Numbered from the stretch's first letter, positions 7,038 through 64,000 are shown. The stretch: 64,000 bases of DNA from Tubulanus polymorphus (GCF_964204645.1 NC_134035.1:3782001-3846000), one strand, 5' to 3'. Numbers and translations: made by a program. Notes: generated by a model from the sequence alone, not told the origin.

Positions 7038-10000
7038 AAAGGGAAGCAAAGCAGCACAATTACTCAGGCTTAAGCAAAAGTTTTCAGCAGTTTTCAGTCA
7101 CGCTGGATTAACAGATTCACGTTTTACACAAGAGCCCAGTCTGTGGCAGTGGGAGAAAGCTGGTGTAACTAACTGGTCGAGTCAGCTGGTCTTAACCTGC
7201 TAAACAAGATGTGGTGCCGGAGGAAGTTGAAGAACAGTTCATCAAGATTTGTGAAACTATCGCCTGCTGCACCATGTGCAATGCAAGCGGCTAGGGTAGT
7301 GCGGCCCGTGTAGGCTAGAAAGTGGTTTTTGACACCGAGTGAGGTCCCTGTTAGTCTAGCACCAAGCCGTCGTTCCCTAAACAACCCGGAACCCGTAGTA
7401 AAAACGACTGACTGATTCAGACTAAATTTGAGTAGGTCCCGGCCTCCACTGACTGTCGTGAAGTGTCTGCGAAGTCACTGGAGTGAGGTCCCCCTAAACT
7501 GTGTGTGTACCTGAGGACATGAAAATGAAATATCATGTATGAATTTTTATCTTTTTTACCAATATCAAAATTCGTACATTTAGAATCATCGCGGCTTTAA
7601 AGTCTTTATCAATTGAGGGAATAGTTCACTGTAAATAAAGAATTAGCGATTGAATTGAGCCCGCTCCACAGTAAAATAGCGCGATTAATTCAATCTCGAC
7701 CGTCTAGTGCTGCCGCTACGTATAACGATAGCGTGGAAAATGTGAACTAACATAATACTCGCTTGCCAGAGTCTTCGAACGGCAGGAGTGGACGAACTAA
7801 TTACCGATTTGCGGGCCGGATTCCGAGGAAAATTCTCAAACTCTGAAAACTGCTCTGAAACGTTCGAACCAAACAATTTTTCTATAAGAGAATGAGCCTT
7901 AAAAGAGTTAATTTGAATCGGGGTATTTCTAGTATGGTCTGGGAGAGAGCGACAGGTGTTTGTATGTTCCCTGATTATTTGCGTGCAAATAGACTATAAT
8001 CGAAGAAAAAATATGGACATTTTGTCAATTCTGATGATAAATTGTCATTAAAAAATGAAAATGAATAATTTATTCTGTATACAAATACTATATTGATTGA
8101 TAAGTAAGTGAATTTTAGCTAAAAAAATTAAATATGTTACCTAAAAATAAGGAAATATCATACAAAATTCAGAACGTATTCATAGTATCATATTTAATCA
8201 GAATTAGACGACACACTGGTCTGTATTGTACGTAATAAGGACATTTAAATTCCGGCGGTAAATATGCGCTACTATTTTAGTTCACAGAAATTCCGCTATC
8301 GTTATTCATAGGAGCAGCACTGTACGGTAAATATCTAACTCAGCCTCGCAATCTTACTGTGGCATGCGAGCAATACAGATATTTTTCTTAGCCGAATTTC
8401 GTTGATTATCTAATACGATTCCATTGTATATGAATAATTCGACTATCGTTTAAGGTTTTTAGAAGGGGATTCTCTTTCTAAAACGAATTTCAAACCGTTT
8501 GTGATAGAACTCTTTTGTCTGCGGAATGTATTAGCATCCAGTAAAGCGCTAAGCTCACATGCCAAAGGAAGAATTTCAAGCAAATTTAATTTTATTCTCT
8601 AAAATAGTGCATTCAACTACCACTAACACTGTAACCAGAAATAATGCTCGGAAACTATTAAAGAAGAGTAAATTTGAAGTCAAGTTCTCCCAATATTTGT
8701 TCGTTTGTTTGTTTATCCTCCCGGTGAGTTCTAACACTGCCAACACATATTTATCCAGTTCATCTGATCCTGATCATCAAACTCAAAAAGTCAATAATTC
8801 CATCCTAATGATGAGAAACATCCTAAAAGATATAAATGAAACTTAATAGATTTGAGGCCACCGAACAGTTATACACAGTGTAAGAGTGTCTAGTTACCGG
8901 TATATCAGAGAAATGGCAATCTAAGGTAGGCTACTCCCCAAAATGAGTGTCAGGGGTCAAATATTTTTTGTCTCCGATTTTGATGAAATTCCGGTTAGAC
9001 TTGTATTCTGGGGTGCTGATTACAAATCTGAACGAATTTTTAGGATCCGAGGCCCAGAAAATGAGAAATTCGAATTTTTTGGGGGACCCCTAAATTTTCA
9101 AAAGGCCTTTGACCCCAGAGTTTTCGAGATATTCAAAATCTGATTGCAGATTTGGAATCAGCACCCCTGACAATATAAATGACTGAAATTTCAAGCAAAT
9201 CGAAGAGTTTCGATTTTTTGGCAAAAAATGCCAAAAATCTAAGGTGTTAGTCCAGGAGTTTTTTTTCGGCGAAAACTTTTTTTCTCTGATTCCTTCGAAA
9301 TTTGGTAGGAATATGTATTCTGAGGTGTAGATTCCGGATCCGCAATCAGATTTTGAATCGGAATTCATCTTCATGGGCAAATAAGGGTTTTAATGCCCAA
9401 AATATGCACCCCAAAAATGGGGTACAAAGTCAAAATATTTTTTTGGCCCAATTTTAATAAAATTTAGTGCAGACATGTTTTTTGGGGTGCTGGTTACAAA
9501 TATGAGGTTAGATTTAGGATCCGAGGCTCCTAAAATGAGATATTCAGGATTTTGTGTTTTGACCCCCTTAATTTCGTCACAAATTTTGATGAAATTCGCC
9601 CGCGAAATTCGGTCCAAAAACGATTTTTATTCAATGATGTCAAATATTCAATTAATTTTTAAGGTAGAAATTGATGCTCTTACTAAAAACCCTGAATTAT
9701 AATTCCCGCAACACAATTACAGGCTGCTTCAAATAACCACATTGACAATTCTTATGAAATGCAGTGAACAGTGTTTACAGATAAACTGCTTTCTCATAAT
9801 TGTTTGGGAAACTTTTAAGAAATTCTACTCACACTCACCAGCCCTTGTCTAGCAGTAATGGTAGTCCACCGAATCCCACAAATCCACATACAGAGTTCAA
9901 CACCTCCTGGAGTCCACCACTGACTGTTTTTTATGAGTATCAATCTAGATGGTCCTAAATGGACTAAATGGTCCGGTTAGTTCACATATAGTCGGGTTAG

Positions 10001-16351: not shown

Positions 16352-16680
16352 CTAAACACAATCCGTTTTTCGTTTATAAGTCCCCACTTTGATCACTGTG
16401 ACATTCTTTGTCATAACGCATCAGCATCATCATTAAATGAATTAGAACAGATCGACTACAGCGGGAGTCTTAGCGCTAAGGGTTGTATATTCGTGGTTCA
16501 AATCGTCCTTAAGATTCTTAACTGACAGGCGTTGGAAACTAAGCGCTCAGAAAGCCTGCAAGCATACATGTAAGAAATATCAAAAGAAATTTCGCCAACT
16601 TATGCCCTCTCAGTATTCGACCGCTACAAATCAAACTCAACCCACCCACGCTGTTAGAAATCATCTACCAGAATTTTGTA
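16352..16680 (+). mobile_element. Degenerate CR1/L2-type LINE ORF2 C-terminal fragment
   Basis: Translation FISPHFDHCDILCHNASASSLNELEQIDYSGSLSAKGC matches the pattern F-I-R-P-H-L-D-Y-C-D...LE.IQY.A.L...GC that follows the RT domain in CR1/L2; frameshifts and stops follow. Confidence 0.7.
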
Positions 16681-16849
16681 GCTACCGATTCGAGAAGATA
16701 CACAATATCCGTGTAAAATAACAAGAGGAATCCTAATATGAATTCAGCCAAAAGAAATGAAAAGGTTTATGGTAAAAATATATGTATTTCGAGCAACGTT
16801 TCGGCAAAATACTATAAGCCATCATCAGGCGTGCTGCGTACATCACCAG

Positions 16850-16893
16850 TACGCCTGATGATGGCTAATAGTAGCCGAAACCTAGGTCGAAAA
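16850..16893 (+). ncRNA. Minimal hammerhead ribozyme motif of the outer element (mirror copy on - strand at about 16791-16832)
   Basis: CUGAUGA-U-GGCUA(auag)UAGCC-GAAA-CCUAG-GUC^: intact core and palindromic ACCUAGGU stem III; stem I is poor. Confidence 0.55.
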
Positions 16894-17020
16894 ACATATC
16901 ACTTTATAGAGATAATCCCACAATTATAACGAAAAAGTCCGAAAATGTTACTTCGAGATAGTAGTTTATTTCAACGTTTCGACTATACCCTAATAGTCAT
17001 CTTCAGGAATAATTCTTCCA

Positions 17021-17067
17021 TTATTCCTGAAGATGACTATTAGGATATAGTCGAAACGTTGAAATAA
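17021..17067 (+). ncRNA. Minimal type-I hammerhead ribozyme motif (mirror copy on - strand at about 16966-17012)
   Basis: UUAUUC-CUGAAGA-U-GACUAU(uaggau)AUAGUC-GAAA-CGUU^GAAAUAA: conserved core, 6-bp stem II, palindromic ACGU stem III, partial stem I. Confidence 0.7.
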
Positions 17068-18691
17068 ACTACTATCTCGAAGTTACATTTTCAGACTTTT
17101 TCGTTATAATTGTGGGATTCTCTCTACATCGCGTCAACACGGATATAGTGTTCTATCAATCGTGAACATATCACTTTACCATAGAACTTTTCTTTTTTGG
17201 CTGAATTCGTCGTGGGATTTCTATCGCTTTGTAACCAAATCGCCAGTTGTTAAATTGCTGAAAAAAACAAACTAGATCATAATGTTCGTGATATTCCATT
17301 TCCATGTTCCTTTAACATTTCAAAAGCAAAATACTCAGTCTTTGAGCGCAAAAGGCACGTCGATTGTCATATCTAAACCTGAAATCAATTTGAACCAAAC
17401 TACAATCAGTTGAGCAGTCATTAGTTTGTCGAGTACGCCAATGGTCAAATTATGATGTATCCGAAACGATAGAGGGATAGAAATGGTGGAGCAACTGTTC
17501 AAATTCCGACTGACAAGAAATCGCCTGATGAAACTGAAATGCAAAGATGCGGAGGCAAATTGAGAATTGCCATGTGTACGACTCGTCCAATGTGTTAGAT
17601 TTCGGTTAGATAACGTTAGATCTCATTTTCGATTTGTCCGTCGCCTAAAACTCATTCCTATCAACAGGTTCGCTGGATAGCTCGTTGACTCCGACCACGC
17701 CACGCAACGGGAAAATTAACGCATTCGTTTCGCGTTGATAAAATGTGCCATATGCGTCTCAGCAGTCTATATATCGGATCGGTGTACGGTTCCTGCGTCC
17801 ATCTCGGGTAACAGTTTGAGCGTCGCTAGGCCCGAAACAACCACCACAAATTCGAGACGAAATTTACATTATACGTCAGGAAATACAACGCATATAATCT
17901 AACTATCGTACGCGAGAAATCGCGGTCAGAAACAGCGATATTTTATCGACTAAGGCAACGACAAGCGGCGGGTGAGGTGTACCTCTTTTTATCACGAATC
18001 GTCGCCAGCTATACGATGACTAGTGTGGACTAGTAAACTGCAATTAATCGGCACAAAATTGTAAGTAATCTTCTATGAATTATACATAGATGTAATTTGT
18101 ACGACCCTCTGATATTTACGGGGGGGGGGGGGGGTAAACAAGAAATTATCGTTATTGACTATTATAAATACATTCAGTAATCACACGCCTGAATCGTTTG
18201 CGGTAAAAGCAACACAGTTTTGATGGATCGAATACGTACGAGCTTAATCTAAACCGGTTTTGGAAATTATCGCTATATAAGGTAAAGGGTTGCAGGGGCG
18301 GATCAAAGCTATATATCATTGTATTCCAGATTATAGTCGGAAAAAAATTGACTAACATAGTACCTAATCAATCAGGTCCAGAAAGCCTTAGATAAAAGGG
18401 AAACGATCATCGTGTTTCTTGTGGAGAACCCCTAAACCCCTCTTTAGTGATAGTCTTCGCTGTCGGCAGGAGCAATCATTTCTAGGAATATAGTCAAATT
18501 TACCCGCTGGGTCCGCCTTGTATATGCAGCGCCAATATAGGATCCAACGATGCCCTTTTCTTTATGATAACTCTCCAGCGAAGTTGCGAGACAACTTATA
18601 GTAAAATTCATCCTAAAAGTCGGAAGAATTCGAATATGATGCGGTTAAAAACAGTTCTGTAATGACGATAACGATCCCTGCGCTTCAAATA

Positions 18692-20016: not shown

Positions 20017-21221
20017 ATGACCGCGTCGCAACAGCAACAACAACAACAACAACAAGAGCATCAACAACAAAATGACGACGCCTGCGTCAAAACACTAGAC
20101 ATCGGATCGACGACTTTCAAAGTTGTCGGATCGTTGCAAGTCATCTGCGCTTTGTGCCTGGTCGTGTTGACAATTCTGGAAATCATCCGCTATATCGGTA
20201 ACCCGTTCTACTACGGGTTCTGGGGCGGTGTATTTTTCGTGATGGCCGGCTTCACGACGATCTGGGCCGGAAACACGTCGACGAAACACGCTCTTCGCGC
20301 TTGTATCGCCGCGTCTTTTATCGCTGTCATCATGGCCGTGTTCGCTACTTGTTCGGTTGGAATTCTACTGGAAAGGTAAATGACTTTATAGAATATACTG
20401 CATGACTGGGACCTGTTGCACAGCCGCCAATTATGTCCGAAAGTGGTCTCCAATTATTTGGATTAGCCTACCTATCGTGCTTAATTTTCGCGAATTATAT
20501 CGTTGGGTTTTCAAAGACTATATCCCATCTAGCTGGACTCTTTTCATGGACTTTCTGAAACACTATTCGTTTTAGAGACCATGATTTACCCTAACGGGAG
20601 GTCTTTGCAGTGGATTGGCCGTATACACATCATATACACATGATCACTCGATCAGATTGGTTACAGAACAAAAAAATGAACTAAAACTGGTCTCAAGTTG
20701 TTAGAATGGTTATAGAACTAAAATGAGCTTAAACTGGTCTTAATTGTTGTTAGATTGGTTATAGAACCAGAATAAGTTAGACTGGCTGTAGAATTAAGAT
20801 GGTCTTAGACTCTATGGTCTTACCTCTGAGCCGTAGCGAAAGTGAGCCCTGGGTGTCTTCATACGACTCCGGTGGAGGCTTTAGAGCTGTAATAATGAAA
20901 GTATAACCATTCAAAACTCATTGCGTTCTATTTTTGTCCAATTTTTCTTGCAGGTATTTTCAGATGGAAGGAGTTTGTTACAGCGAGTTCCCGCCGTCCC
21001 ATCCGGACTTCGATACGTACAGCCCGCTCTGCGACAAACTCAACGATAAGCTTCTATTCGTTGTAGCCGTTCTTTACGGTTTAGACTTATTTTTCATTCT
21101 ATTCGAATTGGGACTAGCTCTCGGTATCAGTATGAAATGCTGCAAAGCGCTCAATCCGCTCAGACCAACGAACAAGGGAGAATGCCAAAAACTAGTAGCT
21201 GGAAACGACAAATCCCCCTAG
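20017..21221 (+). CDS. MS4A/CD20-like four-transmembrane protein; coding exons 20017-20375 and 20954-21221
   Basis: The two ORF segments join in frame over a GT-AG intron (GAAAG|gtaaat...cttgcag|GTAT). Four hydrophobic helices; TM2 'NPFYYGFWGGVFFVMAG' resembles the MS4A G-x-P/x-W-G-G signature; Cys pair in the second extracellular loop; N-terminal polyQ. An acceptor just before the ATG suggests a 5'UTR exon (candidate donor at 18061). Confidence 0.75.
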
Positions 21222-25289: not shown

Positions 25290-32069
<6,780 letters not shown>

Positions 32070-62122: not shown

Positions 62123-64000
62123 TTAAAATCATAAAACTCATCGATAACTTCTTCATTCAAGTTTTTGTCCTTCGCCAGTTAGAGGGACATTTTTGAAGCC
62201 TAATAATGTACATGACGTAGGGAAAAGCGAAACAAGAAATATGGAATCAGTTTGCCTTGCGTGGGTTGGGCTTTTTGTACACAAGATGGATAGAGAGAAA
62301 GGGATGGAGTGGGAGTATAGAAGGGGGAAGAAAGGGAGATGGAAGAAAGGATGGAGGTAGGCAGCATCTGTATCTGTATATACACGTTGACCTGGCATTA
62401 ATTGTCAAAGGTGGAGATAGGGTGAAAATGTCTATACAGAATCCCACAATAATAACTACAAAAATAACATTAGGTCCGAAATGTTTTGAGCTAGTTGTTT
62501 ACTCAACGTTTGGACTTTATCCTAATAGTCATCTTGTGGAATACTACATTCCAGTATTCCAGAAGACGAATATCTTAGAATATCTCGGAATCTATCGATA
62601 ATCTATAGATTATCGTTATAACGCCGACATAGCGTTTTATCAATCGTTAAGGACGGAGGTAGTCGAGAATAAATCGAATTTCAAGCACGTTTCACGTTCG
62701 TACGGAATGACGAGGGGTTATTCGGTGCGAGGAAAAAATACGAAAATCTAAAAAGAATTTCGAGACGACGTCATCCGCTCGTAAAATCGCGTCGTCGTCT
62801 TCTCGGTGTACAGTTCGTTCGATAAAACTACCGCTACGAACGATCATCAATGAGTTGACGAAGCTTTATTCGGCGAGCGATTAAAAACCGACGACGACAA
62901 TTACTTATAAAACATACGAACAAACGAACGTACCGATAAAACGAGGCACACGCGCACGAGCGTACCATCGGGTACGATGTTAAAAACCGCAAGGAAAAAA
63001 AATTTTACGGACGAACATCAAAGAGACGAATCGTCGAACGGTATTAATTTCTTTTTTTTTCGTTTCATCTTGTCGGATCTTGTCTCGAGGAAGATTCACT
63101 TTTTTGTTCGATCGAGTAAAATGTCGGTAAAAACTACTCGCCCCGATTTCGACGGATAGACGAATGTTATATCAGCAGGCGCACCTGACGACCTGAAACT
63201 ATATCTGATTTGAGTTCGTCGATGCTTGGTGTTTTTCAAACTGAATTTTTGACAATTTTCCACGACGAATTACAGAATAAAGCGTGTGATTTTTGAATTT
63301 CTCTTTCCAGTCATTGAGCGCGTACAAATGCTGGTTTAATTTGCGACTTCGCATTAGGGGGGCGGATTTCATCGAATATTTATCGGCGCGTCGTCGTCGC
63401 AAAACGGCCGCATTGTTGACCGCGTTTGTTATTTCAAAAACATCTTGCACCTCAACGAATCGAACGACAAGTGTCCGCGATTGTGCTGAAGTCGCTTAAT
63501 AGCGTTAAAAGCCATTATCCGTCTGCTGACGAAACGTTAATTTATCGCCTTAACGTCGTCGCGCTCGGAGCCGAGTTTGTGATCTTTTTTTAACCAAATG
63601 ATAAAAGATCGTCGTGCGTAAAAATGTTTCCGAGTACCGTCGTTTATCTTTTCGTTTTTTGAAATCTTCAAAAGCCTTTATCGAATGCATTTGTTGCGTC
63701 AACGGAAAACATTCGACGCAGTCATCGTCGACGAGATAATTATTCGGCTGAACTCGATGCGTTAATCGGGCGAAAAAACTCGAGTACATCGACAAGAGAA
63801 CGGCTTGTGACCTGCTCAAAACCTTTGATAAGGCGATGCAAGCTTCGTACAATGCATTCCATGTTGTAGTAAGAGATCTCTTCTCATTTCTGCCTTCGGT
63901 TTGATCTTGAAATGAGATGAGTATTCTTTTTTGGAAAAAAAACGAACATCCACTCTAAATAATTATTCTATGAGCTTTGGATCCCAGGCGCTGTTTCAAA

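Follow-up and report, generated by a model that had tools for sequence, protein, structure and literature searches.

A hallmark of endonuclease-positive (EN+) Penelope-like elements (PLEs) is an inverted pseudo-long terminal repeat (pLTR) that carries a tail of 30 to 40 bp at one end (PMC8557442, PMC3846280). Metazoan PLEs also harbor a minimal hammerhead ribozyme, which in Schistosoma occurs as dual motifs on opposite strands, 100 to 700 bp apart (Cervera and De la Pena 2014, PMC4209133). Work in vitro on PAc, a PLE of Anolis, indicates that the protein nicks and extends both strands, that two internal reverse transcription start sites bracket the tail, and that ribozyme cleavage is not needed, with unprocessed RNA serving as the template (Frangieh et al. 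2024, PMC11167929). Here, we analyzed a window of 64,000 nucleotides from Tubulanus polymorphus (GCF_964204645.1 NC_134035.1:3782001-3846000; positions are counted from its first letter), in which two short inverted repeats, one inside the other, carry hammerhead motifs. Based on the homology, architecture, copy statistics, and covariation observed across the genome, it is highly probable that the locus consists of two nested miniature palindromic insertions from two EN+ PLE lineages, the outer from PLE1 and the inner from PLE2, with each palindrome formed at integration and no inherited hairpin gene.

An original prediction, made from this sequence, had described a 258-bp insert with 107-nt arms and a perfect 14-bp target-site duplication (TSD) inside an older, diverged inverted repeat, and repeat analysis confirmed it. 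The insert (16907-17164) comprises inverted arms at 16907-17013 and 17020-17126, which are 96% complementary with 4 mismatches and a 6-nt spacer, and a 38-nt tail on one side only; arm plus tail is 92% identical to PLE2 (L053:447-590). The outer repeat resolves into three arm pairs that are 73 to 93% complementary. The tail motif said to be common to both units, in opposite orientation, is also present, as a 15-nt sequence at 16700-16714 with an inverted copy at 17137-17151 in the inner tail. The two tails point opposite ways because the inner unit has its sense strand on the plus strand of the window and the outer unit on the minus strand. With an intact TSD and 4 arm mismatches, the inner unit is fairly young. 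The outer unit is by all signs old, given its 79% identity to PLE1, its decayed motifs, and a doubtful TSD.

Full-length partners of both units were found in the genome searched (268 Mb in 77 contigs), which upholds the earlier claim of PLE-derived, nested units with minimal type I hammerheads. PLE1 has a 796-amino-acid open reading frame (ORF; L052:6190-8580) with RVT_1 (E value of 8.8e-12) and GIY-YIG (E value of 1.4e-05) matches, and intact 796-amino-acid ORFs with reverse transcriptase and GIY-YIG are present in both PLE1 and PLE2. The latter is a second lineage with 68% amino acid identity to PLE1, and two further lineages, PLE3 and PLE4, are more distant. A protein search of the genome with the PLE ORF returned 60 scored matches, many of them without an internal stop; the window locus itself has no ORF. 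The inner arm plus tail is nearly identical to the final ~145 nt of PLE2, and the outer unit aligns with the final ~150 nt of PLE1, to whose end young PLE1-type hairpins show 98 to 100% identity. All four traits used to recognize an EN+ PLE insertion were observed, namely, relatives with reverse transcriptase and GIY-YIG, a collinear 3' end, an inverted copy with a tail, and short, variable TSDs without poly(A).

Like the pLTR structures described previously (Arkhipova et al. 2013, PMC3846280; Craig et al. 2021, PMC8557442), these units combine a head-to-head copy, a 30- to 40-bp tail at one end, and short TSDs, and their pLTR contains a hammerhead as well as a TATA box and an initiator; a full-size version exists in this genome (L052). 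Unlike those structures, they have no ORF between the arms and represent a minimal version with ~145 nt per arm, tail included; furthermore, their inner ends lie at a predicted transcription start and not at a random truncation, and they are very abundant. The locus and its units are an additional example of a known PLE structure and, as such, are not surprising.

The genome search that the original prediction proposed, for copy number, TSDs, and a linked PLE ORF, was productive on each point. In addition to the reverse transcriptase and GIY-YIG partners, there were 1349 first-look candidates genome-wide for the inner-unit family and 713 candidates for the outer-unit family, some of the latter with matches 2,856 bp apart. 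The best-scoring 30 copies of the inner family are all full length, 88 to 95% identical, and free of poly(A), and their TSDs measure 11 to 17 bp, with a mode of 13 bp (differences among copies were counted against the majority-rule line of the 258-bp noncoding unit). Like these units, a foldback DNA transposon or miniature inverted-repeat transposable element (MITE) with hammerhead-like words in its inverted repeats by chance would be expected to be small and numerous, with long terminal inverted repeats and flanking direct repeats. We give that explanation practically no credence and rejected it, as it is contradicted by the tail on one side only, which leaves the ends asymmetric, and by TSDs that vary over the range just given. 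Further counts against it are that the arms are collinear with the 3' end of elements encoding reverse transcriptase and GIY-YIG, that the variable part is the center and not the termini, and that the hammerhead motif covaries and is absent from shuffled sequence.

The centers of the palindromes differ in length and sequence in nearly every copy, from 0 to ~25 nt, and often consist of partial duplications of the arm ends. This variability persists even where the arms are 98 to 100% identical to PLE1. Where a copy carries one of the high-frequency substitutions that define subfamilies, its two arms nearly always show it as complementary changes (13 of 13, 12 of 12, 13 of 14, and 4 of 5), and shared one-sided changes are few, being limited to 2 to 3 copies each (most clearly at a CpG) or to the junction. 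Unique centers, conserved arms, and mirrored substitutions together argue that the palindrome is made anew at each integration, and we rejected inheritance of the whole hairpin on the grounds that centers are unique to each copy. Nor is a hairpin-only lineage needed, since each of the two hairpin subfamily variants was also found in longer, promoter-containing PLE2 copies, at 18 and 49 loci. Two copies from different subfamilies, that of the window (L001) and L009 (G000:C11:3654511-3654764), have a common 5-nt center, TCTTC, and fragments of AGTCATCTTC or GAAGATGACT recur in many other centers, which suggests that preferred microhomologies, and not random filler, give rise to the junctions.

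One PLE1 insertion of 7.9 kb (L052:1131-9044; G000:C5:7313130-7321043) is a perfect palindrome, with 3,939-nt arms at 100% identity and no spacer, a tail of ~36 nt at one end only, and a 13-bp TSD, TGATTCGTGACAT; both arms are partial tandems, each with an intact 796-amino-acid ORF. Its zero-nucleotide center lies inside the ORF and would be hard to obtain from two independently truncated cDNAs, which suggests that the second arm was templated on the first cDNA by fold-back copying. Alternatively, the second arm could be primed on the other target strand, with reverse transcription beginning at a second start site, a route that has in vitro support from the Anolis PLE, in which both strands are nicked and extended and two start sites bracket the tail (PMC11167929). 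In LINE-1 twin priming, which Ostertag and Kazazian reportedly described in 2001, one retrotransposition event gives rise to an inverted duplication within one TSD pair. PLE palindromes resemble these products in being inverted duplications from a single event with one TSD pair; however, LINE-1 inversions are partial and asymmetric, whereas PLE palindromes are mirror images with a defined outer offset of 35 to 40 nt.

That offset, which corresponds to the tail described for PLEs, recurs among copies, and the arm ends cluster. Across 30 PLE2-type copies, the tailed arm ends at PLE2 positions 588-590, which is the element end, the tail-less arm ends at 550-552 (or as far as ~555 in copies with the templated ATG), and the start of both arms lies at 446-449. 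In PLE1 coordinates, 9 young PLE1-type copies have the tailed arm ending at 9042-9044, the tail-less arm at 9006-9012 (8995 in one copy), and the inner arm ends at 8893-8895. The outer-end offset of the window copy is thus seen again in the 30 PLE2-type and 9 PLE1-type copies, as it is in the 7.9-kb insertion. The extra (A)TG at the tail-less junction was considered as a set of untemplated bases, an idea we rejected, as it is the reverse complement of CAT in the ..CATCGCG.. of the PLE. The inner arm ends coincide with the A of TCATT (PLE2) or TCAGT (PLE1), and in all four PLE lineages the first T of a TATA box lies ~31 nt (29 to 31 nt) upstream of such an initiator-like A. TATA/initiator geometry with such spacing is standard for animal promoters. 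A TATA box plus initiator has also been noted in the terminal repeats of rotifer PLEs (PMC3846280). From this geometry, we infer that the inner ends mark the transcription start of the terminal-repeat promoter and that each arm is a complete cDNA of the resulting RNA.

As in PAc, two end points 35 to 40 nt apart bracket the tail, and the tail region holds a stem-loop, features seen here as genomic footprints. Reverse transcription in PAc starts 111 to 118 nt inside the ORF, and its hammerhead straddles the start codon, whereas in the elements described here the ATG follows the element end by a few nucleotides and the hammerhead by ~100 nt. Integration probably proceeds as follows. A short RNA of ~145 nt would extend from the predicted promoter start (TATA box at -31, TCA(G/T)T initiator) to the element 3' end, and the PLE enzyme would integrate it by target-primed reverse transcription, generating a TSD of 11 to 15 bp. 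A mirror-image second arm would arise in the same event and end 35 to 40 nt short of the element end, leaving the one-sided tail. The minimal hammerhead would form the first ~50 nt of the PLE transcript and be carried along passively; it would not have cut the RNAs that seeded these copies, and in read-through hairpin RNA it would be locked in a long duplex.

Four hammerhead motifs had been predicted at the locus. All four sets of core boxes were found, in two intact motifs (inner unit) and two decayed ones (outer unit). We searched the 64-kb window using a descriptor of the minimal hammerhead (helix I of at least 3 bp, CUGANGA, an optional bulge, helix II of at least 4 bp closed by G-C, GAAA, a palindromic helix III, and UH). 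This proposed check succeeded: there were exactly 2 matches, the two inner arms, one per strand, and 0 in 100 Markov shuffles. Both outer motifs keep CUGAUGA and GAAA and fail at helix I (1 to 2 bp), and in one of them loop II is also shorter and helix III altered. The other proposed check, with Rfam hammerhead models, came back empty, as the type I, II, III, HH9, and HH10 families gave no match at the gathering score in the whole window and the models gave none at an E value of ≤10 on 16500-17500; a permissive threshold yielded only hairpin-driven, spurious microRNA-like matches. The missing match is likely due to a motif that is nearly without helix III.

The core boxes CUGANGA, GAAA, and UH stand in type I order and are invariant in all nine aligned sequences. 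All four lineages have an unpaired U between A9 and G10.1, a G10.1-C11.1 closing pair, and CG at 15.2/16.2, and ACGU can therefore pair only between two ribozymes; helix II has 6 bp, and helix I has 3 to 6 bp across lineages. In a covariation test of the four PLE lineages plus window copies (8 distinct sequences from 4 lineages in one genome), 90% of cells pair, compared to 67% in shuffles, and slid-partner controls pair in 27 to 44%. The original prediction had named covariation of stem II among copies beforehand as a point on which it might be refuted; compensatory changes, on both sides of the pair, occur in 8 of 10 pairs of helices I and II. From such compensatory pairing across lineages it follows that the fold is under selection in the elements, and the motif is identified as a true minimal PLE hammerhead that evolution has preserved. 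No feature listed for that ribozyme is missing from it (PMC4209133). In this genome, its first nucleotide coincides with the predicted transcript start or lies within a few nucleotides of it, a position that the cited papers do not describe.

The claim that this is a ribozyme-processed mobile unit was not supported. The predicted cleavage site lies 43 nt inside each arm; arms run through it uncut in 41 of the 42 hairpins of an exact-pattern count and extend past it in all 39 copies examined in detail. In addition, the predicted fold of a transcript through the inner unit is a 107-bp duplex of -165 kcal/mol, versus ~-7 kcal/mol for helix II alone, and such a hairpin would sequester the ribozyme. 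The unit ends are apparently set by the predicted transcription start and the reverse transcription start region and not by the ribozyme site. Uncut arms and a hairpin that buries the ribozyme fit earlier observations that minimal hammerheads are only weakly active in vitro (PMC4209133) and that PLEs can insert without ribozyme cleavage (PMC11167929). In the single differing hairpin of the 42, a PLE2-type copy with a TT center and its own 11-bp TSD (L060; G000:C8:14016560-14016940), both arms begin at the G right after the predicted GUU site. This copy may either have arisen from a template that the ribozyme had cleaved or have lost sequence symmetrically at the center of the palindrome. A search for PLE1 hairpins with arms starting at the cleavage site found none. 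For PLE3 and PLE4, 3'-end queries included upstream sequence, and the top matches were long copies with few inverted partners; three such partner arms beside long PLE4 copies begin 4 to 9 nt after the predicted cleavage site, and those of PLE3 start anywhere between 17 nt before and 9 nt after that site. The tail-less arms of PLE3 stop 38 nt short of the element end.

The position of the ends also bears on whether the hairpins could be a self-propagating noncoding retroelement, akin to a short interspersed nuclear element or a retrozyme, whose own hammerheads yield a small linear or circular RNA template. Such an element would be in keeping with a high-copy, discrete unit with TSDs, with intact and covarying minimal hammerheads in the inner arms, with the arms of L060 that start exactly at the cleavage site, and with a TATAT-like motif ~32 to 36 nt upstream of each arm start in PLE2-type hairpins; moreover, animal retrozymes have been proposed as PLE derivatives (bioRxiv 10.64898/2026.07.22.740005). 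We regard it as very improbable, since the arms of nearly all copies start 43 nt ahead of the cleavage site, the unique centers indicate that the hairpin is not inherited, all tested hairpin variants are present in longer PLE copies, and the long hairpin outcompetes the ribozyme fold. Known non-long-terminal-repeat retrozymes (Cervera and De la Pena 2020, PMC7229834; Li et al. 2026, 10.64898/2026.07.22.740005) are likewise noncoding, have type I hammerheads, and are related to the PLE pLTR, but they are head-to-tail tandems that give circular RNA. The units here are inverted, their ends are off the ribozyme sites, and a single unit would not be expected to yield a circle; membership in that group was rejected, as the pairs are inverted and same-sense motifs arise only through nesting.

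Nesting likewise accounts for a feature from which an excised small RNA had been predicted. The inner unit landed in the tail-less arm of the outer unit, 18 nt past the outer hammerhead site, and its position inside the outer unit creates a same-sense hammerhead pair 172 nt apart on each strand. The pair proposed at 16855 and 17027 on the plus strand is therefore present at that spacing; its interpretation as an excision geometry was not supported, since the pair is a product of nesting only. The spacing is an accident of this locus and not a property of the family. At a second nested locus (L041; G000:C2:31379258-31382449, ~1427-1696), a young PLE1-type hairpin lies inside the hammerhead of a PLE2-type element. 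Two nested cases in 39 are not clearly above expectation from the PLE content of the genome, and a target preference cannot be claimed.

The hairpins might instead serve mainly as sources of double-stranded RNA (dsRNA), with host read-through RNA diced into PLE-silencing small RNAs, a role that would be exapted or incidental atop an origin as integration scars. There are hundreds to thousands of copies, the near-perfect 107-bp duplexes are identical in sequence to both untranslated ends (5' and 3') of active PLEs, and PLE-derived small RNAs have been reported in a rotifer (PMC3846280). However, an exon search around the locus detected none within 2.8 kb, placing it at least that far from the nearest detected exon, and the hairpin copies show no sign of selection, with old copies (the outer unit and a hairpin at 62438-62660) decaying. 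We consider a primary role of this kind unlikely. The nearest detectable coding exon is at 20017-20379 on the plus strand, where a 120-amino-acid ORF has a CD20-like (PF04103) match with an E value of 1.9e-06. The hairpin at 62438-62660 is a strongly decayed PLE2-type copy, with a left arm 75% identical to PLE2, a right arm that is partly deleted, a tail-like end (..TATCAATCGTT), and a mutated hammerhead core.

Several points weigh against the interpretation of the locus as two nested scars of PLE integration, or against parts of it. The copies examined are the best-scoring matches, among which short or odd copies are undersampled. The transcription start site is placed only by TATA/initiator geometry and by where the copies end. 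In PLE2-type hairpins, the reverse complement of helix II puts TATAT ~32 to 36 nt upstream of the start of the opposite arm, and some transcription from the hairpin copies themselves is possible. Judging from L060, cleaved templates may be used occasionally. Lastly, the genome data do not separate fold-back copying from second-strand priming.

The features of the locus are compiled in Table 1. Elsewhere in the window, a minisatellite at 28992-29279 (53-bp unit, 5.4 copies) has CUGAUGA followed by a stem in its reverse complement; it showed no BLAST similarity to the four PLE 3' ends.

Table 1. Features of the nested PLE-derived units in the T. polymorphus window
Feature	Position	Strand	Remarks
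Outer unit (older, PLE1 type), possible decayed TSD	16675-16684 and 17228-17237	.	TTTGTAGCTA versus TTTGTAACCA, 8/10 match
Outer unit, tail	16685-16712 (left boundary approximate)	-	Aligns to PLE1 3' end; conserved ACAC..GTGT stem-loop motif
Outer unit, tailed arm	16713-16836	-	79% identity to PLE1 L052:8888-9038
Decayed minimal hammerhead, tailed outer arm	16787-16836, C3 at 16828	-	CUGAUGA from C3; helix I 2 bp; helix II with 2 mismatches
Outer palindrome center, 10 nt	16837-16846	.	Between arms 16810-16836 and 16847-16873
Outer unit, tail-less arm, inner part	16847-16906	+	Cut by the inner insertion at 16906/16907
Decayed hammerhead motif, tail-less outer arm	C3 at 16855, GUC at 16886-16888	+	CUGAUGA from C3; core boxes present
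Inner unit (younger, PLE2 type), 14-bp TSD, left copy	16893-16906	.	AACATATCACTTTA, 100% repeat pair
Inner unit, tail-less arm	16907-17013	-	Inverted pair; maps to PLE2 L053:448-550
Intact minimal hammerhead, tail-less inner arm	16965-17014, C3 at 17006	-	CUGAAGA from C3; descriptor match
Inner palindrome center (junction)	17014-17019	.	Center hypervariable among copies
Inner unit, tailed arm	17020-17126	+	With tail, maps to PLE2 L053:447-590
Intact minimal hammerhead, tailed inner arm	17019-17068, C3 at 17027	+	CUGAAGA from C3; descriptor match; predicted cleavage after GUU, 17062/17063
Inner unit, tail, 38 nt, one end only	17127-17164	+	Contains ACACGGATATAGTGT; ends ..ATCGTG like the PLE2 unit
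Inner unit, 14-bp TSD, right copy	17165-17178	.	AACATATCACTTTA, same repeat pair
Outer unit, tail-less arm, outer part	17179-17235	+	End somewhere in 17227-17235; decay blurs boundary

For genome annotation, hairpins of ~260 bp such as these are to be masked as PLE insertion products and not as ribozyme genes, microRNA precursors, or MITEs. We propose, tentatively and with more doubt than confidence, that the mini-palindromes, which number in the thousands, are a natural record of PLE integration. They would record that the transcript starts at the first hammerhead nucleotides, that short start-to-end RNAs are frequent templates, that the second arm is an exact mirror with a fixed offset of 35 to 40 nt, and that ribozyme-cleaved RNA is rarely used (~1 in 40, L060), with dsRNA against PLEs or divergent transcripts from a fortuitous TATAT as a by-product. 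If this is true, L060-type copies would be the first in vivo footprint of minimal-hammerhead cleavage.

The locus and the genome contribute a very large, young set of minimal palindromes whose inner ends coincide with the predicted start site, evidence suggesting that the hammerhead sits at the transcript 5' end, and what may be a rough in vivo ratio of uncut to cut templates. Well assembled and spanning palindromes from 260 bp to 7.9 kb, this set of PLE integration products lies in the same genome as ORF-bearing lineages without internal stops and is useful for the study of PLE mechanism. It could test the two-start-site and fold-back models, which derive from one in vitro system, and could address whether the minimal hammerhead ever cuts in vivo.

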